In this document: positions 735 to 37,410 of the stretch, in pieces
How the letters are laid out: every line of letters starts with the position of its first letter
How positions within the stretch are numbered: position 1 is the stretch's first letter
Source of the DNA: Guillardia theta CCMP2712
Taxonomy: Eukaryota > Protista > Cryptophyta
Direction: 5' to 3'
DNA length: 64,000 nt
NCBI RefSeq assembly: GCF_000315625.1
Contig: NW_005434670.1
Coordinates: 1,070,258 to 1,134,257, forward strand
Translations under genes and position numbers: made by a program
Notes under the pieces: generated by a model
What the model was told of the DNA's origin: nothing
Database searches by the model: none
Seen by the model: the letters and a program-made list of their open reading frames with translations, nothing else

Positions 735-3700
735 AAGAAAGAATAGTCTATTAACAATCTCTACTTCTCAACACTGCTTCTCACTGTACAACTGTGTTGC
801 GAAACTGTACATAAGACTTGTGCAGCCCCGACTTGAGGCTGTACATGTCGTGCAAGATCACCTTGACAGCCGCGCGTTAGAGGAGCAGACGGGCGAGAAA
901 AAGACAAGGAAGAAACAAGTAGCCACGACGATCAGCGAGCCAGACGGCAGGAGCAGGACGGGGGAGACAGCTTACCTGCATCTCACAGATATGACGATGG
1001 AGACCTTCGGTTGTCTCCCACTCGCTCAGAGGAACCAGCATGCAGCTGTTCATGATCGAGCTCTTGATGTACCCCACCTGCTCAACCTCAGATCGTAGGA
1101 CAGCTCAGGCGACAATGTCCTACCTCCACACAAACGCACACATCGCGATACCCGACCGTCTCATGCTTGTTGTATGCGGGATCATACCTGCGGTGAAGAT
1201 GAGGAGGAGAGGAGAGGAGGTGCGTGTCGTCAGCTCACCTGTTCTTGATGCATGTGATGCTCATGAACTTCTTGCTCAGCTCCACTCCCTCTCCCTCCGA
1301 CTCCTGCGGACACGAGACTCTCAGACGACTGTCGGTCGGCCCCCAAGACCAGCACAAGCTCACCTCAGCCCCATCAGGCTGCACTTTCCCCCTGTGCGGG
1401 AACCGCTTCTCGTACCCGAACGCAACCTCCGACGTCCTCATCAGATGCTCCACCCACCGCGTCAGCTCCGTCAGGTCCTTCACCACAATGCTGCACCGCA
1501 CGAGGTCCGTGAGCTTGGAGCAGTCTCGCTCGTAGGACCGCACGACTTTCTGCAGAGCGCGCGAGCATGTCTTGATGTTTCCCTGCTTCACCACTCCGTG
1601 CGCGTTCCACCGAGCCACGAAGTCCTGGAAAGGACCGCTCAGCTGCTGCGCTTCTTTGTACAAGAGCTCGATGTCGTTAGATCTTTGCCCCATCTTGAGA
1701 CGTTTGGAGATGCGGGGTTTGTACAGACCCATCAGGATCATCGCCTTCCGACCGAGGCCTCGTCGTTCTGTCTGCCGCGCAACGAGTAGGAGGGAGTTGA
1801 CTTGTCTGGTGAGCTGATACAAACGTTGTAGCATGTCGGCTTCGTTGCGTCTCATCCTGTTCCACGCCTCGCTGAACGCATTTGATTTTTCCTCCAGCTC
1901 CTCGTAGATCGCACGAAGCTTCAAGTAATACATCACAGGCATGGAAATGGCAAGACCAAGCAACACGGTGCCGTACACGTAGAACAAGTAAATGGCCCAC
2001 TGAGCGTTCTGCGCGAAGGTGGTGAAATAGAAGCAGTATGCTCCCTGGAGGAAAAAGACAACGACATAGAAGTACTGCTGTCTGACATGGGCAAAGAAAA
2101 GCCCTACCCAGATAAAGGCCGAAGTAGAAAGACTCCAATACCCATGACAAACAGAGCCGATGCCATTGCCTTGGAATTCACATTGTATGAAGTCCAACAT
2201 GGCGCAGATGACGTACATGAAGGAAACCAGCCAAGCCGTTGAGATCAGAATACGCCCTCCATTCAACGGCGTATTCCTGCGTGCCGCCATGATTCCCATG
2301 ACGTAACACATGGCCCAGAAGATGGAGATGGCTGGATCAGCCAACACTGACCATCGCAACACTTTGGGCTCGACAGGAACGTTGTTATCTGCTTGAAATA
2401 GCCAACGCCGTGTTCCAGTCAAGCCTTGTATCTCGTATGATGCAAAGATCAGGTAAATCATGCTCAAGCAACTGATGATGATCTGAGTAGGGGACTTGAG
2501 TAAACCAGTCTCAATGGCGTTGGAAGTCATCATGGCGAGCCACTGGTTGGCTTCGATGTCTCGATATCGCTCAAGCCGAGACTTGAGGCTTTGAAAGCGC
2601 ATCTCTGACCTCGCCAGGGTCACCGACTGCTTCAGCGCATCCATCGTCTGCTTGTTAAGCACAATGCTGTTGAAGTCTGGTAGCTCATACTCCACGCAGC
2701 TGTGCAGGCGTACGAAATCGTGCAGGTCCAAGTCAATCGCGCTGCGCAGCTGCTGTAGCGAGCTGATCCCCATGAGCGCGAGGATCTGCCTCAGGTCCTC
2801 CAGCAGACCCACAGACCTCAGCCACTCAATCATCTCCGAGGACCTCGGTCGATGCATGGTGAAGTCACTTTGAATCTTGAGGCTTTTCTTGTCCCAGACA
2901 ACCTTTACCGTCTCCATCAGAAAGGTCGCAGCATGCCAGGCAAACGATGAGTCTGACCCTTTGAGCACCAAGAACGAGGTCCTCAGATCCATCATCGGGA
3001 GGGTGAAGGCGTACTCTGACTGGCAAGACTCTCGTTCTTGTGGAGGCAGCAGGATTACAATCGCATCCTTGACTGAGATGTCAGCGATGACCTGGAAGTG
3101 CTTGTCGTTGTATATGCCCATCTTCTGGATGATTACCTTGGCTCGTTCGATGGTCTTCGTGGATGGTGCATGGCTCAAGGCGTTGATCATAGAGAAGGGA
3201 AAGTCGTCCGACCCAGCAGATCTGTCATCGACGAAGATGGGAGCGATCGCACGAATCCACCCAATGTTGTTGTACAGGAAGTAGATGGCTAGGATGATGT
3301 GTAAAAGGATCTCGCTCGACTCATCTTTTCCTTCCTCGGGGCGGATCGAAAGCAGTTTGTTCAAGGTACCTGTGCCCGTGTCATCAAGACTAACGAAAGG
3401 TGCGAAGAGGAGGCTGTTGGTGGAGCACAAGCAGTTGTCCAAGTAATGCGCCTTGCTGACAGCCGGGAGACATTCGAAGTCCAGGTACGTCTTCTCATTC
3501 GAAAACCTGTCGAACTCAAAATCTTCACACGTCTGTGTGGGCTTGTGCAGGAGGAAGGAGAAGGGCAACTGGCTGGAGAGCATGTGGAAGTTCTTGTGTA
3601 TCTCCTTCTGCCTCTGGACGCCCTGCCATTGAGTATCTCCCTGATCTGAGCCTGCCGACGGGGAGGCATTCTGGCTGACATGACTGTACAGCTCAGAGTG

Positions 3701-3850
3701 CGACCTGAACAAGAGAAAATAATCTGTGAAGAGACCGAAGTCCGAGCCAAACACAGTATGCTCCTCCATGGCAAGGATGAAAGCTTTAGGGGCTCCGATG
3801 TAACGGGCGAATCAAGAAATGAAGTATCATGGCGGGGTATGGTCAGGTAT
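735..3850. repeat. Left arm of a ~3.1-kb inverted segmental duplication (partner 6534-9649)
   Basis: Reverse complement of 6534-9649 with constant register (positions sum to 10384 at both ends and at the ATGs). Gapped similarity continues to ~682/9710. Confidence 0.97.
781..3769 (-). CDS. TIR-like/SAM-like/~6TM/RelA-SpoT-like nucleotidyltransferase protein, copy A (5 exons)
   Basis: Long first exon from 3769 plus four 3' introns mirroring copy B (coordinate = 10384 - x); stop at 783-781. Motifs: NIKTCSRALQKVVRSY, DLVRCSIV, KNRYDP..GYRDV, ICEMQV, HKSY; six hydrophobic segments. Confidence 0.85.
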
Positions 3851-5576
3851 CGTGAATTCTTTCACCGTGAAGAGTGGAGGGGTTCGAAGAAGTAGCCTAA
3901 GGTTACGTGATGGACTCTTGCGCACTGCTGATTGCCTTGCACATTGTTACTGCCAGTCCCGACCGACATGGAAATCAGATTTCTGCATCAAGCCGTATCC
4001 AGAAAAAGCACCAAATCTGAGTTTGTATGAGAAGGGGTACACATGCAGTTTCTTGCTGAAAACATTGCCACTGCCTCTGAGGTCGTTTGACCTACGGATG
4101 GCCACAAGGATTCGCAATTTGAGATAGAGATGGGGCAGTAAGTTAAGTCTGTCTTGATATCGACCGTTTTATGATCCACAGAACTAAATCTTCTCTCCAA
4201 ATGGATCTTGTTGAACTTGGATCGCTCAGGGGTACAGGGTGGGGTTTGCACAGCACGAATATAGCTACCCGGATACACAGAACTGGTTAGATAGAGCCAA
4301 GGAAATGAGGAATAGGAAACACAGACGATGATATGAAGCCACTATGGTCAGAGAGGAGGGGCGAGAAAGGCTCCGTCATGATGTTGTTCCGGCCGCTCCA
4401 TCATGCGGAGCATAGCTGGTGATGAACTGACCGCTGTATGGGGGTAGGGTACAATCATCTTTTTTTGTACCTAGGTGGGTGGTGATGCACGAAACGATGT
4501 ACCGGTGCTTATCTATGATATTTTACAGAAATTATTACGGTAGGGTACTCTTGAAAAATCAACCATCACACGTTGTTTCGATAGTAAAAGGGGTAGGGTG
4601 GACTACCCTACCTCTTCTCTGTCTCCTGCGGGAAGCCTCATTCGGTTTACTTTACCACTGAGTTTAACCCCACCCCACCCATCGAAATAACGCACTACTA
4701 CCCCAATGAACTAAGTACCCCTTAAAACACACTACCCCACTAGATTACATGTTGACAATCCACCCCTCCAAGACTTGCGACCTTACCCTACCCCCTAGTC
4801 GACACTGTGTAGTCATCTTGTTGCTAAATGGACCCCTTTTAAATCCCACTTCTACCCACCCTTTTCCCAACTTTTTCATCCCTTTGGTACGCCTATGGAT
4901 TTTGTGGAAGGAGTCATCAAGAGATCACCCATGTCAAGGTACCCACCCCTTCTGCATACCACCTACCCAAGTCTCACGTCGGTACAAATTGGATTGTCTC
5001 TTCCAACCTACAGGGATATCTTGTATCTGGGGTACCCTATAAACCTCCGCCACCACCCCCACCCGCCGTTACACCCCACCCCACCACATCGAAATTTCAT
5101 GCGCAGTTTGTGGCTCGACTCAGGCCGCCAGTAGTAGGAGTCATATTGAAGGAATCGAACACCAAGGTGGGACGTGACCGCAGGTCAAGGGTGTTGGACA
5201 GGGGTGGGGTACTAATATTGGTGGTGGTACGGGCTCGAGAGCCAGAGGCCGATGCCACCAAAACAACACAGGATGGGGTGGGTTATAAAGGCATGCATCG
5301 CGCCGTGATAGGAGGATTATTTTAAAATTATTTACAATTAAAAAATGATTTATTCAAGATCTGAGGCTCCAAAAAGCACCTTTTCCCATCAAGGAGTCAA
5401 CGGGTGGATGGTGTAATTTTGCTGTTTTGATACCGGTGGCCCAAAGTTAATTGTCAGGAGGGAAACAATTCAGGTGGTTTCGTGGAGGACCCCGAAATCA
5501 TCTTCAATTTTCATACGAACTTTACAATTGTCAGCACACCGTCACAACAATACAATAATGGGCCTCCTAAAACATA

Positions 5577-6140
5577 GCCGCCGGCCCGGCGCCGGGGCTC
5601 CGACTCCGGCCGCCCGCGCGGCCGGCCCAGGGGGTCCGACGGCGATCGGGCCGATCATCCGATCGGCGGACTCGATCGGACCGGGCGGCCACGCCGCCGC
5701 CCGGGATGCCGCAGTGACTCTCAGCCGGCCCGGTGCCCCCCCAGGCTTCCGATGATCGGCTCAGCGGCTCCGAGTCAGTCCACTGGGTGGCCAGGCTCAG
5801 GCTCAGGCCACTCAGTGAGTGGCAGCCGGGGCAAGGTGACCGGGGCCGGGCCGGCCGGGCGGCGGGCGACTGCGTCACCCGGCGGGCCGAACGCCGGGTG
5901 CAGTCACGGTGACGGCGGGCCGGGTGCCGGTGCCGCTGAGTGGCCGCGTGGCCCTGCGGCGGACCGTTCCGAGTCCGGCCGAACTTCATCAGTCCGATCC
6001 TGGCACGGTGGCCCATCACCGTGGCACCGTGAGGCCCGGCCGAGTCGGTAACTAAGTTGAAACCTTTCGAGTCTCAAAATGCAAAAGACTAATCAGCCCG
6101 GCCCCCCCCCCGGCCCGGGCCCACGGTGGTTCGGAGGGCC
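5577..6140. promoter_or_regulatory. GC-rich, palindrome-dense intergenic island between the divergent duplicated genes
   Basis: Very dense CCGG, GGCC, CCGATC/GATCGG, GAGTC/GACTC and CACGGT words; only low-complexity ORFs. Regulatory role is inferred from position only. Confidence 0.4.
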
Positions 6141-6533
6141 GTAAACTACTCTTGGACCCGGGTCGTATCACTCCGAATTTTCCACCCCCTAATGTCCATG
6201 ATACTACCCCACCTTTCTGCTATGAAAACTATATATAATAATTGTCCTGTTCGCCACCCCCATTCATAGCCAGACAGCCACCCACCCGGGAGTACACCTG
6301 CTGGCATACAACCGACTCCTCGAACACCTCGTACCCTATGGCGAGCATATGTGGTTTGCCTTCCCACTGCTCTACACACGCACATCCTTGTACCGAGTCC
6401 CCTATGCTTGCAACTGCTCGTGCTTGATATCATCGCCTGCCTCTGACGTCCATCCATGCTAACATCTGACCACAAACAGATTGAGATACATCTCCACATT
6501 AATCCTCAAAGCCTCTTATGAGAGAGATATACA

Positions 6534-9500
6534 ATACCTGACCATACCCCGCCATGATACTTCATTTCTTGATTCGCCCGTTACATTGGAGCCCCTAAAG
6601 CTTTCATCCTTGCCATGGAGGAGCATACTGTGTTTGGCTCGGACTTCGGTCTCTTCACAGATTATTTTCTCTTGTTCAGGTCGCACTCTGAGCTGTACAG
6701 TCATGTCAGCCAGAATGCCTCCCCGTCGGCAGGCTCAGATCAGGGAGATACTCAATGGCAGGGCGTCCAGAGGCAGAAGGAGATACACAAGAACTTCCAC
6801 ATGCTCTCCAGCCAGTTGCCCTTCTCCTTCCTCCTGCACAAGCCCACACAGACGTGTGAAGATTTTGAGTTCGACAGGTTTTCGAATGAGAAGACGTACC
6901 TGGACTTCGAATGTCTCCCGGCTGTCAGCAAGGCGCATTACTTGGACAACTGCTTGTGCTCCACCAACAGCCTCCTCTTCGCACCTTTCGTTAGTCTTGA
7001 TGACACGGGCACAGGTACCTTGAACAAACTGCTTTCGATCCGCCCCGAGGAAGGAAAAGATGAGTCGAGCGAGATCCTTTTACACATCATCCTAGCCATC
7101 TACTTCCTGTACAACAACATTGGGTGGATTCGTGCGATCGCTCCCATCTTCGTCGATGACAGATCTGCTGGGTCGGACGACTTTCCCTTCTCTATGATCA
7201 ACGCCTTGAGCCAAACGCCATCCACGAAGACCATCGAACGAGCCAAGGTAATCATCCAGAAGATGGGCATATACAACGACAAGCACTTCCAGGTCATCGC
7301 TGACATCTCAGTCAAGGATGCGATTGTAATCCTGCTGCCTCCTCAAGAACGAGAGTCTTGCCAGTCAGAGTACGCCTTCACCCTCCCGATGATGGATCTG
7401 AGGACCTCGTTCTTGGTGCTCAAAGGGTCAGACTCATCGTTTGCCTGGCATGCTGCGACCTTTCTGATGGAGACGGTAAAGGTTGTCTGGGACAAGAAAA
7501 GCCTCAAGATTCAAAGTGACTTCACCATGCATCGTCCGAGGTCCTCGGAGATGATTGAGTGGCTGAGGTCTGTGGGTCTGCTGGAGGACCTGAGGCAGAT
7601 CCTCGCGCTCATGGGGATCAGCTCGCTACAGCAGCTGCGCAGCGCGATTGACTTGGACCTGCACGATTTCGTACGCCTGCACAGCTGCGTGGAGTATGAG
7701 CTACCAGACTCCAACAGTGTACAGCTCATAAAGCAGTCGATGGATGCGCTGAAGCAGTCGGTGACCCTGGCGAGGTCAGAGATGCGCTTTCAAAGCCTCA
7801 AGTCTCGGCTTGAGCGATATCGAGACATCGAAGCCAACCAGTGGCTCGCCATGATGACTTCCAACGCCATTGAGACTGGTTTACTCCAGTCCCCTACTCA
7901 GATCATCATCTCAGGTGTTAGCATGATTTACCTGATCTTTGCATCATACGAGATACAAGGCTTGACTGGAACACGGCGTTGGCTATATCAAGCAGATAAC
8001 AACGTTCCTGTCGAGCCCAAAGTGTTACGATGGTCAGTGTTGGCTGATCCAGCCATCTCCATCTTCTGGGCAATTGGATACATTGTTGGGATCATGGCGG
8101 CACGCAGGAATACGCCGTTGAATGGAGGGCGTATTCTGATCTCAACGGCTTGGCTGGTTTCCTTCATGTACGTCGTCTGCGCCATGTTGGACTTCATACA
8201 ATGTGAATTCCAAGGCAATGGCATCGGCTCTGTTTGTCATGGGTATTGGAGTCTTTCTACTTCGGCCTTTATCTGGGTAGGGCTTTTCTTTGCCCATGTC
8301 AGACAGCAGTACTTCTATGTTGTGCTGTGTTTCCTCCAGGGAGCATACTGCTTGTACTTCACTACCTTCGCGCAGAACGCTCAGTGGGCCATTTACTTGT
8401 TCTACGTGTTCGGCACCATGTTACTTGTCTTTACCATTTCCATGCCTGTGATGTATTACTTGAAGCTTCGTGCGATCTACGAGGAGCTGGAGGAAAAATC
8501 AAATGCGTTCAGCGAGGCGTGGAACAGGATGAGACGCAACGAAGCCGACATGCTACAACGTTTGTATCAGCTCACCAGACAAGTCAACTCCCTCCTACTC
8601 GTTGCGCGGCAGACAGAACGACGAGGCCTGGGTCGGAAGGCGATGATCCTGATGGGTCTGTACAAACCCCGCATCTCCAAACGTCTCAAGATGGGGCAAA
8701 GATCTAACGACATCGAGCTCTTGTACAAAGAAGCGCAGCAGCTGAGCGGTCCTTTCCAGGACTTCGTGGCTCGGTGGAACGCGCACGGAGTGGTGAAGCA
8801 GGGAAACATCAAGACATGCTCGCGCGCTCTGCAGAAAGTCGTGCGGTCCTACGAGCGAGACTGCTCCAAGCTCACGGACCTCGTGCGGTGCAGCATTGTG
8901 GTGAAGGACCTGACGGAGCTGACGCGGTGGGTGGAGCATCTGATGAGGACGTCGGAGGTTGCGTTCGGGTACGAGAAGCGGTTCCCGCACAGGGGGAAAG
9001 TGCAGCCTGATGGGGCTGAGGTGAGCTTGTGCTGGTCTTGGGGGCCGACCGACAGTCGTCTGAGAGTCTCGTGACCGCAGGAGTCCGAGGGGGAGGGAGT
9101 GGAGCTGAGCAAGAAGTTCATGAGCATCACATGCATCAAGAACAGGTGAGCTGACGACACGCACCTCCTCTCCTCTCCTCCTCATCTTCACCGCAGGTAT
9201 GATCCCGCATACAACAAGCATGAGACGGTCGGGTATCGCGATGTGTGCGTTTGTGTGGAGGTAGGACATTGTCGCCTGAGCTGTCCTACGATCTGAGGTT
9301 GAGCAGGTGGGGTACATCAAGAGCTCGATCATGAACAGCTGCATGCTGGTTCCTCTGAGCGAGTGGGAGACAACCGAAGGTCTCCATCGTCATATCTGTG
9401 AGATGCAGGTAAGCTGTCTCCCCTGTCCTGCTCCTGCCGTCTGGCTCGCTGATCGTCGTGGCTACTTGTTTCTTCCTTGTCTTTTTCTCGCCCGTCTGCT

Positions 9501-9649
9501 CCTCTGACGCGCGGCTGTCAAGGTGATCTTGCACGACATGTACAGCCTCAAGTCGGGGCTGCATAAGTCTTACGTACAGTTTCGCAACACAGTTGTACAG
9601 TGAGAAGCAGTGTTGAGAAGTAGAGATTGTTAATAGACTATTCTTTCTT
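6534..9649. repeat. Right arm of the inverted segmental duplication (partner 735-3850); 2683-bp unique spacer
   Basis: atacctgaccatacccc at 6534 is the reverse complement of ggggtatggtcaggtat ending at 3850; taatagactattctttctt ending at 9649 matches 735 onward. Confidence 0.97.
6615..9603 (+). CDS. TIR-like/SAM-like/~6TM/RelA-SpoT-like nucleotidyltransferase protein, copy B (5 exons)
   Basis: Exons 6615-9020, 9081-9145, 9197-9260, 9307-9408, 9523-9603; GT-AG introns of 60, 51, 46 and 114 nt splice in frame to ...IKNRYDPAYNKHETVGYRDVCVCVEVGYIK...HICEMQVILHDMYSLKSGLHKSYVQFRNTVVQ*. The 5' end could extend upstream. Confidence 0.85.
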
Positions 9650-10405
9650 TACGGTTGGTATCAGTGCCGGTAGGCCCAGGTGACAAACGGCGCAAAAGGC
9701 TCAGCAGAAGATTTGTTAAATTACGTAGTAAGACTCTTCAATTGACATGTCTTGTAGGGAGATCGTGTATGCCTCTTAACTCCCCAAAAGCCTACTGGGA
9801 ATCATCATGACCGTCGCTATCGGAGGATTGGCCGGGCCTGGGCAGCTGGCCCGGGCCCGACCGCCTGGGCGGTGCCTTCAAAATCAGATCCGCCTCAGCA
9901 AAGCTGCGCGGCACCAAGAGCCATGCTGGCGTCGTTGCTTACCATGCTGAACGAGACAGCAACGGAGGCGCCGGAAGGGTTCTATGCATCAGACGGGCAG
10001 ACCAGCGTCAATGCTGTAAGTGAATGTACTGCTTGTGGCTGTGAGAATATTTGTCCTGTTTCTCCTCAAATGCATTTTTTGTGCCCCTGCGCAAATTTGG
10101 CAATGTGTTGATTCGTGCGCTTCCATGGCTCAAAACCTCTGTCGCTATGGATTACAGTCTAGCTTTGAAACAACACTGTGTTGTCTTGTTAAATTGAAGG
10201 AGAATTGCTGTTGACGATTTCTTCTTTTTTCTCTTTTTACAGTACAGCGCGAATTGTGGAGTAGTTTACGTCTACGGCCCCCCAGGGTTTCAGCCAAAGA
10301 CATGGGGACAGGGAAGTTGTTTTGATCCGACCATGGTATCATTGCCCGCCGATTATGTAGAAGTGTTTCAATAGATATTCAAAGAGAGAAGCATCTGGAC
10401 TCATG

Positions 10406-11634
10406 TCAATCCAGCAGCTCTAGGTCATAACCAACTGCAAAGTGGCAACTTCCTGTCACGATCCTCTTCTCCTGCAGTGTATCAAGCGGATCACGGTTAT
10501 CCTTACGGCAGTCAGATACGTTCTTCCGCTCCCTCCCCTGGTTGGATCTCATGCTCGATAAACCCAGTCCAGCAGCGAACTCGTCGAAGGTCATCCTAGC
10601 GGGGGCTAGCTTGAAGATGACGATCATCTCTTTCCTGAAGACCTCATTGAGCTTGTGATTCTTCGATCTGTTGATGATGGATCAGATCTCATATCTCCCA
10701 CAGCTGAGGGGGGAAAGCTGATCCCACCTGATCTCCTCGCAACTGAACCAGGGCTTGATGCCCTGCATGAACAGTCCCTCGATCCTTTCCGAGCGATGAG
10801 AAGCGGAGATGTAGATCTGGGGGAGCTCCTCCTATAACGATGGGGAGAGGATGTCACTGACTTCATCCTCCTCGTTGCTTCCACTAGACAAGCACCTCAC
10901 TCATGTTCTTCAAGGGTTTCCTCCTCCTGGCGTGCAAGCAGCAGAGGGTACGGAGGGTTCGGATCAGCGGCTCAACAATCTCCTCCTGCCGCAAGTGTGA
11001 GAAGGTAAGAGGAGAATGGTAATATCGGAATGTCACCTCATAGAAGACATCTGACATGATGATGAAGTCGAACGACTCATCCTTCATGAGCGCGATCGCC
11101 TCCTCGCCATGGTTCCAGTCCAGGGTAATCGCCTCGATCGGCCGCGCGTCAAGCTCGAGGGAGTCCGAGTTCAACAGGATGTTGCCGTGCAGCAGAGATA
11201 TCATGCACTCCTTGTCGCTCATGACCACTCTCGCCGCCCCTTTGACGGACAGCGTCAACCCCAAGTATCCTGTGCCCGCCGCTAGCTCCAGCACTCTGCT
11301 CTCCGCGAGTACCTCGGAGAACTCTGCAAGCATGAATCGCCCCAGCGCAATGGCTCCTTTCCAGACGTCTCCTCCTGTGTCTGTCAGCCTGTCAGTCCTG
11401 CATGCGGCATCGAGAGCGAGGCAGCGACTTCACCTTCGAGCAGGAGCTTTGTGTTGGTCATAATCTTTATGCCACCAGGGAATGAGCGGACCCCCAAGTT
11501 GCGAGGAGGGATCTTGAGCGCGCCCTCCATGTCCGCGTCTTCCCATGCTGAGCTCATGCCTTGCTACCAGCCATGCTCTCCTCCTCTTCTCCCATGCAGT
11601 CGCGCCATTCCTGGAGGTACCTGACAGGCACCAT
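10406..11634 (-). CDS. Seven-beta-strand protein methyltransferase, METTL21/Methyltransf_16 family (multi-exon; ends approximate)
   Basis: Spliced EGGDVWKGAIALGRFM, motif I VLELAAGTGYLGL, VVMSD, LDWNH and FDFIIMSDVFY (DxxY motif typical of this family). Confidence 0.85.
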
Positions 11635-11933
11635 GGCGCCCAGGGGCAGCGGCGTCAGTTAATTCCCTGTCCTGCTATTAAAGCTGCTGTCCCGGCCATG
11701 GAGAATCTTGGAGCGATCCTCAGACGAGAGGGAGGGAGGGGAGGGGAGGGACAAGAGGCTAGGGGAGAGCAGGGGAGAGACGAGGGAAGGTAGAAGATGC
11801 ATGCAGAGGAGGGAGCGGAAGGCAGAGGAGGCAGAGGAAGGCAGAGGAAGGCAGAGGAGGTTGAGAGCACGAGAGTGGTTGGGTCGCATGAAAGCATGCA
11901 GTTGTGGACGAGCCTAGAAGATGCGATGGACTG

Positions 11934-36794: not shown

Positions 36795-37410
36795 TCCGGT
36801 CGCAACCCTGCAGGCCGCATCCCCGCTAGGACCCATCTGAGGCGCCTTGGCCGCACCTGAGCGGAGGCGGCTTGGCAGCAGCTTCAATCCGGCAGTCCCG
36901 CGGCCCGGGCTCCGTCGGCTCTAGCACCACGGTGACCGGCGTGCCGGGCAGAGCCGGGCGCAGCCTGGCATGCGGGCGGGCCCGGCCGCGGTCACGGTAG
37001 CAGTGCCGGGCCACCCCGGCGGCCGCGCGGCCCTGCGACGGGTAACTGCACCACCGCCGGGTGACTCTGTGACTGAGGCACACCGTCGTACGGTCACCCC
37101 GCGTCCGATCACCGCACCTCACTGAGTCGGAGCCGAGTCACCCTCGGACCGTCCGATCGTGGGCCCGCCGCCACGTGGTACGGTCACTTACTAGCGGCTA
37201 TCCGATGATCATAGTATCATTCCTGGCATCCGAGGGGATCGGCCGCTCGGCCCCCGATCACAGCAGTGTGACACCGCGCCGTGACTCGGGGGCCGGGCCC
37301 ACGGGCCCGGGCCCACGGGCCCGGCGGGGGCCGCTATTGTATCCAGGTCCTCACTCGGCGTCAGTAGCCCCGGACCGACTCACTGGCCATACGGAGGCTA
37401 CCCGGCTGGA
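36795..37410. promoter_or_regulatory. GC-rich, palindrome-dense island between the divergent USP and 37670 genes
   Basis: Same word set as 5577-6140 (CCGG, GGGCCC, CCGATC, GAGTC, GTACGGTCAC twice). Function inferred. Confidence 0.4.

Follow-up and report, generated by a model that had tools for sequence, protein, structure and literature searches.

The nuclear genome of Guillardia theta CCMP2712 encodes a protein of 905 amino acids that joins, in order along the chain, a TIR-like domain, one SAM domain, approximately six hydrophobic helices and a synthetase domain of the RelA/SpoT type. Its gene, ‘copy A’, occupies positions 6615-9603 of the forward strand of the DNA analyzed here (‘the window’, 64 000 nucleotides), and comprises five exons joined in frame. 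We regard the identities of the domains as close to secure, and we consider the protein best explained, as a whole, as a multi-pass membrane TIR-SAM synthetase resembling the bacterial toxin Tas1, a reading to which we assign a probability of roughly 0.6. The domain order was proposed earlier from the letters of the DNA alone (the ‘sequence-only reading’), and proved right on each point. That reading also supposed the architecture to be new; we found no description of a TIR-SAM-6TM-RSH protein in the literature searched, and every named member of the family found in public records is a ‘hypothetical protein’.

Copy A is a genuine, expressed nuclear gene. Its exons (6615-9020, 9081-9145, 9197-9260, 9307-9408 and 9523-9603; forward strand, as are all features below unless stated otherwise) are separated by introns of 60, 51, 46 and 114 nt (9021-9080, 9146-9196, 9261-9306 and 9409-9522), all of the GT-AG kind. 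The protein specified by the joined exons is identical to the transcript-derived protein, P0001, encoded by an intron-free JGI transcript contig. The four splice joints are present in raw RNA reads of run X24 (1, 5, 11 and 15 spliced reads), and identical joints are present in contigs from three other runs (X3, X7 and X9). Each of the introns predicted from the DNA is thus confirmed by RNA.

The gene has an inverted twin. Paralogue B (781-3769, reverse strand; exons 1364-3769, 1239-1303, 1124-1187, 976-1077 and 781-861) also specifies 905 amino acids, has the same five-exon structure, and differs from copy A at 24 residues. The two lie head to head within an inverted duplication (735-9649), the arms of which (735-3853 and 6531-9649; 3119 nt, 98% alike) flank a spacer of 2677 nt. 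The gene adjoining copy A codes for a Methyltransf_16 protein. Contigs of X7 and X9 contain B-type variants, and so paralogue B is expressed, too. Synonymous divergence (pS) between the copies is 0.11 in the membrane module versus 0.01-0.06 elsewhere. Positive selection on this module was considered and rejected, since synonymous divergence is raised there as well and pN/pS is 0.4; a mosaic history (e.g. gene conversion of the flanks) fits these values better. A census of the genome found 14 loci with TIR-SAM, membrane module and RSH domain in that order, and many more with the enzyme domain. Outside Guillardia, an orthologue with 77% identity and the same start methionine occurs in Hanusia phi, and relatives occur in Baffinella and Proteomonas. 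Annotation based on Pfam does not see the family, which at present leaves the 14 genes of full architecture, and the many other carriers of the domain in Guillardia, Hanusia, Baffinella and Proteomonas, without a classification.

The TIR-like domain (6657-7514; residues ~15-300, including an insert at ~65-100 that modelled poorly) is followed by the SAM domain (7533-7799; residues ~307-395). Both had been discerned in the sequence-only reading, and on both of them family-level Pfam matches, profile searches of solved structures and fold searches agree. The former has the flavodoxin-like fold of TIR domains, and homology to accepted TIRs; the latter is a five-helix bundle with profile similarity to SAM families. 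Searches of Pfam with the full spliced protein, and with its unspliced exon pieces, returned chance-level rows only. Foldseek comparison of the 415-residue N-terminal model with the PDB gave nothing below E 0.17, and an exhaustive fold search was needed.

A TIR of Guillardia theta, that of L1IYH1, is reported to make cADPR and deplete NAD+, and its catalytic glutamate is residue 1141 according to the supplement of the preprint (10.64898/2026.04.20.719644). The family profile matches this tested TIR with an hhalign probability of 97.3, and a ‘D-x-V-L-L/M-E’ helix is common to both. At the position of the catalytic glutamate, identified by alignment column, copy A has His157 (codon CAC, 7083-7085), which aligns with the Glu of ‘VLMEW’ in L1IYH1. 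Of 36 homologues, 28 have Glu in this column; the subclade of copy A has His. As aligned, then, the TIR of copy A is without the catalytic glutamate of NADases, and any contribution it makes would therefore be that of a scaffold rather than of an NADase. L1IYH1 is of the same TIR subfamily, but it keeps the glutamate where copy A has histidine, and carries its TIR at the C-terminal end of 1337 amino acids. We infer that TIR and SAM serve in copy A as modules for assembly or scaffolding. Two copies of the SAM domain modelled together gave an ipSAE of 0.37 (median of three runs, one of which gave 0.00; pLDDT low, 39-61), and the best control 0.02. The median exceeds the mark set for such pairs, which in the calibration for microbes was reached by 21 of 30 solved homo-pairs and by 0 of 23 solved single chains; for eukaryotes the calibration is weaker. 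The pair model lends weak support to oligomerization via SAM.

The membrane module (7890-8462; residues ~426-616) was placed by Kyte-Doolittle windows. Five segments exceed 1.5, with a sixth, weaker one in between (residues ~429-614, ~7900-8460), in keeping with the earlier estimate of about six hydrophobic helices at ~7880-8460. The module has no Pfam match, and an Atlas feature search gave no usable match either. It is kept as a unit in the 14 loci of the genome, and occurs also in proteins that match this part alone. Because the number of helices is even, both of the large soluble ends most likely face the cytosol. The sequence-only reading had called the protein a sensor or receptor; we do not retain this, as the outside loops are just ~20-30 residues long and no ligand-binding domain was seen. 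A helical linker (8463-8696; residues ~617-694), read from the sequence, connects the last membrane helix to the enzyme domain; it has weak, chance-level Pfam rows only and may act as a signalling helix.

The enzyme domain (8697-9603; residues 695-905) is of the RelA/SpoT type, specifically Tas1/SAS-like, and all four introns fall inside it. Every motif quoted for it in the sequence-only reading is present, in order, in the spliced protein: K733..R737..K741, D755-L-V-R758, K822-N-R..G836-Y-R-D, E877-M-Q879 and H893..Y896. Among 34 homologues with 28-47% identity to the domain of copy A, K733, R737, K741, R744, Y746, D755, R758, G836, R838, E877 and Q879 are invariant. The roles of these residues are those that we take to follow from the published structures of RelSeq and SAS enzymes: lysines and arginines for the donor ATP, an aspartate for Mg, and a glutamate for catalysis. 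On this assignment, the donor-ATP basic residues, the Mg-binding aspartate and the catalytic glutamate (ExQ) are all present, with the motifs in register. Asp755 of the DLVR motif (codon GAC, 8877-8879), presumed to bind Mg, aligns with DLAR of Tas1 and with DLVR of a Shewanella protein. The presumed catalytic ExQ, Glu877-Met-Gln879 (GAG ATG CAG, 9400-9408), aligns with AEIQ of the Shewanella protein; its alignment with IEVQIRT of the canonical RSH of Guillardia theta is weak. The fold is that of a Pol-beta-like alpha/beta nucleotidyltransferase. Between copies A and B, the domain has 0 amino-acid replacements and 5 silent changes.

Homology becomes evident at the level of the family profile. 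Aligned by this profile, the enzyme domain matches Tas1 at E 1.3e-9, over the first half of the domain, and the Shewanella protein, which carries PF04607, at E 2.8e-14 (hhalign probability 99.4, E 4e-21). Neither the full protein nor its C-terminal 211 amino acids match PF04607 in Pfam, even at E 10, and the model is touched weakly by just 8 of the 34 domains aligned, with E 1.6e-4 at best, and by 2 of 66 further full-length homologues. By phmmer, the C-terminal domain alone, searched against solved structures, gave a weak Tas1 row, E 0.16, and the family profile was needed. A homologue search with residues 690-900 retrieved only the protein itself and its orthologue. Compared by hhalign with individual exon pieces of the canonical RSH that the alga itself encodes, the profile placed the motifs in register at E 0.03 and 0.085, values that are not significant.

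The acceptor-side motifs of (p)ppGpp-type synthetases (G-loop GYxSxH and EIQIRT) are absent; copy A reads GYRDV and EMQVIL in their place. The sequence-only reading had singled these motifs out as deviant. KNRF, GYRD and ExQ without RT are indeed present, but they are not unique, for the Shewanella RelA/SpoT protein has them. This sharing, together with the alignment of the first half of the domain with Tas1, marks a subfamily rather than a decayed enzyme. Since the acceptor side is unlike that of (p)ppGpp synthetases, the substrate is not readable from the sequence: the kinship of the enzyme domain is of the Tas1 type, as judged by profile alignment, and this kinship does not extend to a reading of adenine as the acceptor or of (p)ppApp as the product. 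On these comparisons, we consider the domain probably to be a pyrophosphokinase of the RelA/SpoT superfamily, of the Tas1/small-alarmone-synthetase branch, and predict that it is active.

Several known systems resemble parts of copy A. Tas1 is a (p)ppApp synthetase toxin of the type VI secretion system of Pseudomonas aeruginosa (PDB 6ox6). It is a secreted bacterial protein that has a domain for delivery and is paired with a cognate immunity protein, whereas copy A is eukaryotic, spliced and membrane-embedded, its enzyme fused to TIR, SAM and membrane helices; it is not, in this sense, a secreted toxin. The small alarmone synthetases SAS1/RelQ and SAS2/RelP (PDB 5ded, 6fgk and 6ex0) have a single domain, form soluble tetramers and make (p)ppGpp. 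Their identity to copy A is just 13-17%, and they have GYxSxH and EIQIRT where copy A has GYRD and EMQV. The Shewanella protein, P0197, is homologous over the full length of the domain and has KNRF, GYRD and ExQ in common with it, but is a soluble bacterial protein of 260 amino acids, functionally uncharacterized, without the beta-hairpin insert and variable loop of the algal domain. Proteins of the P0197 type are conserved across the genus (45 genome records), and a related-loci search with this protein found Shewanella genomes only. SARM1 and TIR-1 have the order ARM-SAM-SAM-TIR with a catalytic TIR; copy A has the reverse order (TIR then SAM), one SAM and no ARM. The enzyme of SARM1 is its TIR; copy A has six membrane helices, a TIR without the glutamate, and RSH as its enzyme, and is thus not a member of that family. 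Some NLRs of fungi carry RelA_SpoT as their N-terminal effector domain (Dyrka et al. 2014, PMC4986451). Like copy A, these are eukaryotic, non-plastid proteins in which an RSH synthetase domain is joined to immune-type modules. They are soluble and biochemically uncharacterized, however, with NACHT/NB-ARC and repeats, and their RSH domain is N-terminal where that of copy A is C-terminal.

That copy A might be an ordinary (p)ppGpp synthetase of the plastid stringent response, merely divergent in sequence, is suggested by its membership in the RSH superfamily, but we judge this very improbable. Two separate canonical HD+RelA_SpoT genes exist elsewhere in the genome (contigs C47 and C24), so the TIR-SAM-6TM-RSH family is not the plastid enzyme; these two long genes were the sole carriers of HD_4 in the search that revealed them. 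The plastid enzymes of plants and algae (RSH1-4) possess a plastid-targeting presequence, TGS/ACT or EF-hand regions, and an HD hydrolase domain, whether whole or as a remnant. Copy A has none of HD (HD_4), TGS or ACT by Pfam match anywhere in its 905 amino acids; its first TIR strand begins at residue ~15, leaving no room for a presequence, and the Hanusia orthologue has the same start methionine. The TIR itself is the N-terminus. The sequence-only reading, which had seen neither HD domain nor targeting presequence and had set the protein apart from plastid RSH enzymes, holds on both counts. The six membrane helices and TIR/SAM partners also speak against a plastid enzyme, as does the nature of the nearest solved relative, a (p)ppApp toxin. 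An artefactual locus, whether contaminating bacterial DNA, a pseudogene or an ORF arising by chance, might be entertained because the enzyme domain is bacterial in type and receives no name from standard annotation. The likelihood of this is negligible: RNA shows the precise removal of four spliceosomal introns, the frame is intact, dN/dS is low, and the 77% identical orthologue of Hanusia phi is joined by the Baffinella and Proteomonas relatives and the 14 paralogues of the genome. Contamination and pseudogene are ruled out by the RNA splicing and by the named relatives in the records of cryptophytes.

Two other alternatives concern what the enzyme domain does. It might be a tRNA pyrophosphokinase, like CapRel or FaRel2, that pyrophosphorylates 3' CCA ends and stops translation in the style of abortive infection, releasing no free nucleotide; we think this unlikely. 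Or it might be a pseudo-enzyme or a nucleotide-binding module, in a membrane protein that serves as scaffold or channel under the control of nucleotides. In favor of this, the TIR of copy A no longer has its catalytic residue, the enzyme domain has no Pfam match, and its G-loop is deviant. Yet all positions that should bind ATP or Mg or carry out catalysis are without variation among the 34 diverged homologues, and constraint between the paralogues is strong (no replacements against the five silent changes), and we consider a pseudo-enzyme quite unlikely.

Under the preferred reading, that of an active, membrane-embedded Tas1-like synthetase, the protein would be switched on when its TIR/SAM ends self-associate, or when a change in the membrane module is relayed by the helical linker. 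The enzyme would then move pyrophosphate from ATP onto a purine nucleotide, at its 3'-OH. Our leading guess for the acceptor is an adenine nucleotide, yielding (p)ppApp as Tas1 does, and the outcome might be a signal carried by the nucleotide or else a depletion of ATP. The TIR/SAM partners, the expansion of the family within this lineage, and the resemblance to fungal NLRs and to bacterial toxSAS/CapRel enzymes favor a role in stress, defence or cell death over one in the plastid stringent response. By this analogy, defence or death is a tentative suggestion, at somewhat less than even odds. The most specific form of the proposal is speculative, and rather unlikely as it stands: an oligomerization-switched Tas1-like enzyme, embedded in the membrane, would make (p)ppApp or another 3'-pyrophosphorylated nucleotide in the eukaryote's own cytosol; this nucleotide would act either as a second messenger of immunity or as a suicide effector that drains ATP, and the 14-member family, with dozens of other Guillardia proteins bearing the domain, would form a repertoire of receptors and effectors. 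If true, this would constitute a nucleotide-based arm of defence parallel to the cleavage of NAD+ by TIR/SARM1.

TIR and SAM are hallmark modules of cell-death signalling in animals, plants and bacteria. Alarmone-type pyrophosphokinases are seen, to our knowledge, as enzymes of bacteria and plastids, and almost nothing is known of what they do in eukaryotes outside plastids. In the present case an enzyme of the toxin-like Tas1/SAS branch, predicted to be intact, sits in an expressed family of nuclear algal genes, joined to TIR, SAM and a membrane anchor. If the domain is active, this eukaryote would make (p)ppApp-like or related nucleotides in its cytosol, and the family would offer a testable model for the recruitment of bacterial conflict enzymes into protist immunity or stress signalling. 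The architecture may mark an unstudied, nucleotide-based system of signalling or cell death in a eukaryote.

Copy A, the gene at 6615-9603 on the forward strand, encodes a 905-residue protein in which a TIR-like region, a SAM domain and a membrane module precede a C-terminal RelA/SpoT-type (RSH) domain. The longest single reading frame in the ORF track, 6615-9074, accounts for 819 amino acids; joining five exons on the + strand (6615-9020, 9081-9145, 9197-9260, 9307-9408 and 9523-9603) gives an unbroken frame of 905 codons. The four introns, of 60, 51, 46 and 114 nt, all follow the GT..AG rule. The ATG at 6615 is the first start codon downstream of an in-frame stop, and P0002, a 77% orthologue, has its start methionine at the same position. 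Transcripts bear out the sequence-only reading that the ORF track misses four short introns: raw reads of RNA-seq run X24 (2026) span the four exon joints (1, 5, 11 and 15 reads, respectively), and all four joints are present in contigs of runs X3, X7 and X9, from three studies. The X3 contig does not differ from copy A across the coding region. P0001, a 900-residue protein from a JGI record, equals our model without difference from residue 6 to the C-terminus; its 4965-nt transcript contig has an intron-free coding sequence, and its alignment blocks with the window (99.96-100% identity) stop precisely at the predicted exon borders. This contig (L001) is an apparent assembly chimera, with its coding part from copy A. 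The sole match of its nucleotides 1-570 is the region upstream of a second gene, copy B (window 4423-3853, - strand), and nucleotides 3290-4965 read into the convergent neighbouring Methyltransf_16 gene (window ~9900-11650, -), whose introns are spliced out.

Copy B (781-3769, -) has the same five-exon structure and 905 codons, and lies head-to-head with copy A in an inverted duplication (735-3853 and 6531-9649) with arms of 3119 nt, 98% alike, and a spacer of 2677 nt. Upstream of the ATG the two copies have only 84 nt in common. Variants of copy B occur in contigs of X7 and X9; both copies are therefore transcribed. The proteins differ at 24 positions (2 in the TIR, 5 just past the SAM domain and 17 in the membrane module), and are identical over the final 298 residues. 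Divergence between the copies is uneven (window 7710-8435 versus 1949-2674, -): the membrane module has a pS of 0.11 and a pN/pS of 0.4, whereas pS in the other parts is 0.01-0.06. Such a pattern suggests a mosaic history, such as gene conversion that acted on the flanks but bypassed the module, or import of the module from a third paralogue; with pS raised and pN/pS at 0.4, positive selection on the module is the poorer fit. Several other family members are also paired, inverted or tandem (contigs C117, C37, C100, C49 and C206). A palindromic decamer, GGCCCGGGCC, has three sites in the window (6112-6121, 9848-9857 and 37304-37313), against a chance expectation of none. G+C-rich stretches just beyond both ends of copy A hold two of them, and the decamer may be a small repeated element.

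The RSH domain (residues 695-905) reaches no Pfam family, either alone or within the whole protein. An exhaustive HMMER search across 1.84 billion representatives returned 130 relatives, nine of them with E <1e-30. We aligned 34 C-terminal domains, 28-47% identical to that of copy A, and found 11 invariant columns: K733, R737, K741, R744, Y746, D755, R758, G836, R838, E877 and Q879. The profile of this alignment matches Tas1, a (p)ppApp toxin (PDB 6ox6; E 1.3e-9), and a Shewanella gelidimarina protein in which Pfam recognises a RelA/SpoT domain (E 2.8e-14). Hhalign covers the whole domain of the latter (probability 99.4%, E 4e-21), with the DLVR, KNRF, GYRD, ExQ and HxxY motifs in register. 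These matches settle fold and superfamily as RelA/SpoT-type. Among characterised proteins, Tas1 is the closest relative. The Shewanella protein (250-260 aa; L026-L070), the closest bacterial relative with a Pfam match, occurs in 45 genome records of the genus, with identities of 47-100%; it looks like a genus-wide conserved gene rather than a mobile toxin, and we know of no studies of its function.

For the N-terminal end, residues 1-420 were aligned with their homologues, 42 sequences in all. Its SAM-like stretch holds up: the alignment matches solved SAM domains (best E 9e-6), and Pfam finds SAM_2 in 14 members and SAM_1 in 13. The TIR-like assignment is likewise upheld, by TIR_2 matches in four members and by likeness to a characterised G. 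theta TIR, although Foldseek found no match with the N-terminal model. A 2026 preprint (10.64898/2026.04.20.719644) reports both cADPR production and NAD+ depletion by this TIR (UniProt L1IYH1, residues 1049-1273, with Glu 1141 as the catalytic residue). A 52-residue L1IYH1 peptide matches contig C63 of the assembly at 100% (G000:C63:189539-189694), and a 68% identical paralogue lies at C33:44406-44555; both belong to the TIR subfamily of copy A and keep the catalytic Glu. The family profile aligns with the L1IYH1 domain over 151 columns (probability 97.3%, E 1.7e-11), placing the catalytic Glu ('VLMEW') on the conserved 'NVLLE' of the family. That column holds Glu in 28 of 36 homologues, and His in copy A (His157, codon 7083-7085, +) and its closest relatives. 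To our knowledge, every characterised catalytic TIR needs this Glu for NADase activity. The N-terminus of copy A is a TIR fold that has lost the NADase glutamate from its catalytic column, and we read it as a scaffold for that reason. A two-copy SAM model had an ipSAE of 0.37 versus 0.02 for the best control (pLDDT 39-61), with one of three runs scoring 0; on microbial calibration, 21 of 30 solved homo-pairs and none of 23 single chains reach the ipSAE mark.

Five segments between residues ~429 and ~614 exceed a Kyte-Doolittle score of 1.5 (19-residue windows), and a weaker one (~545-562) follows the third, in agreement with the six or so helices proposed earlier. Six helices would put both large ends on one side, presumably the cytosol because the enzyme uses ATP. 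Loops predicted to face outward are short, one of some 25-30 residues and another of some 20 that contains two Cys. Other proteins conserve the module by itself; Pfam and Atlas searches with it gave no match. Nothing indicates that it binds a ligand, and so the label 'receptor' is unsupported.

Six-frame searches of the assembly (87,145,349 bases, 669 contigs) supplied the paralogue count called for by the sequence-only reading. There are 86 matches to the enzyme domain, which probably represent some 40 genes or more, 28 to the TIR-SAM profile and 14 to the membrane module. All 14 module matches are directly flanked, in one long open frame, by TIR-SAM and enzyme-domain matches; exactly this layout is thus found in 14 G. 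theta genes, several of them paired (C4, C117 and C37). Other genes join the enzyme domain to TIR-SAM without the module, or to SAM alone; partners in homologues from other sources include discoidin, WW, kinase, GHKL and HEPN. Wherever a source organism is named, it is a cryptophyte (Guillardia, Hanusia, Baffinella or Proteomonas); the remainder are environmental sequences, and P0002 clusters with a Hanusia phi protein. The expansion is lineage-specific. All named members found in databases are filed as hypothetical or uncharacterised, the G. theta paralogues in NCBI/UniProt as hypothetical proteins GUITHDRAFT_*. Separately, the microbial rhodopsin family has at least 44 six-frame matches in the genome (contigs C135, C100, C53, C38, C3, C26, C84 and others); one ORF on C135 is closely related to the anion channelrhodopsin GtACR1 (270 bits over 209 aa).

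We propose that the SAM domain and TIR scaffold would drive assembly, and that the RSH pyrophosphokinase would be activated by assembly or through a helical linker. The acceptor would be a purine nucleotide, with (p)ppApp the leading guess for the product, given that no characterised relative is nearer than Tas1. A tRNA pyrophosphokinase is an unlikely alternative; CapRel and FaRel2 are also among the structural matches. Somewhat less probable still is a pseudo-enzyme. Motif deviations are indeed present, as first noted, but they are shared with the Shewanella protein and mark a subfamily, not a decayed enzyme. From work on RelSeq, SAS and Tas1 we presume that the basic residues bind donor ATP, Asp755 Mg, and that Glu877 is the catalytic base; these roles are predicted for copy A, where the catalytic set, as read from the alignment, is intact. 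That copy A is a plastid (p)ppGpp enzyme is very improbable: its architecture contradicts this, and two canonical long RSH genes, each with HD_4 and RelA_SpoT, already lie elsewhere in the genome (contigs C47 and C24); the family is distinct from them.

Each single module of copy A is already known, as are the TIR-SAM combination, in SARM1, and an RSH domain in a eukaryotic immune-type protein, in fungal NLRs. The literature searched holds no description of the TIR-SAM-6TM-RSH combination, nor of a eukaryotic clade of the Tas1/SAS-like branch. By analogy with SARM1, with bacterial toxSAS and CapRel, and with fungal NLRs that carry RelA_SpoT as effector domains (PMC4986451), the copy A family may serve in defence, stress or death.
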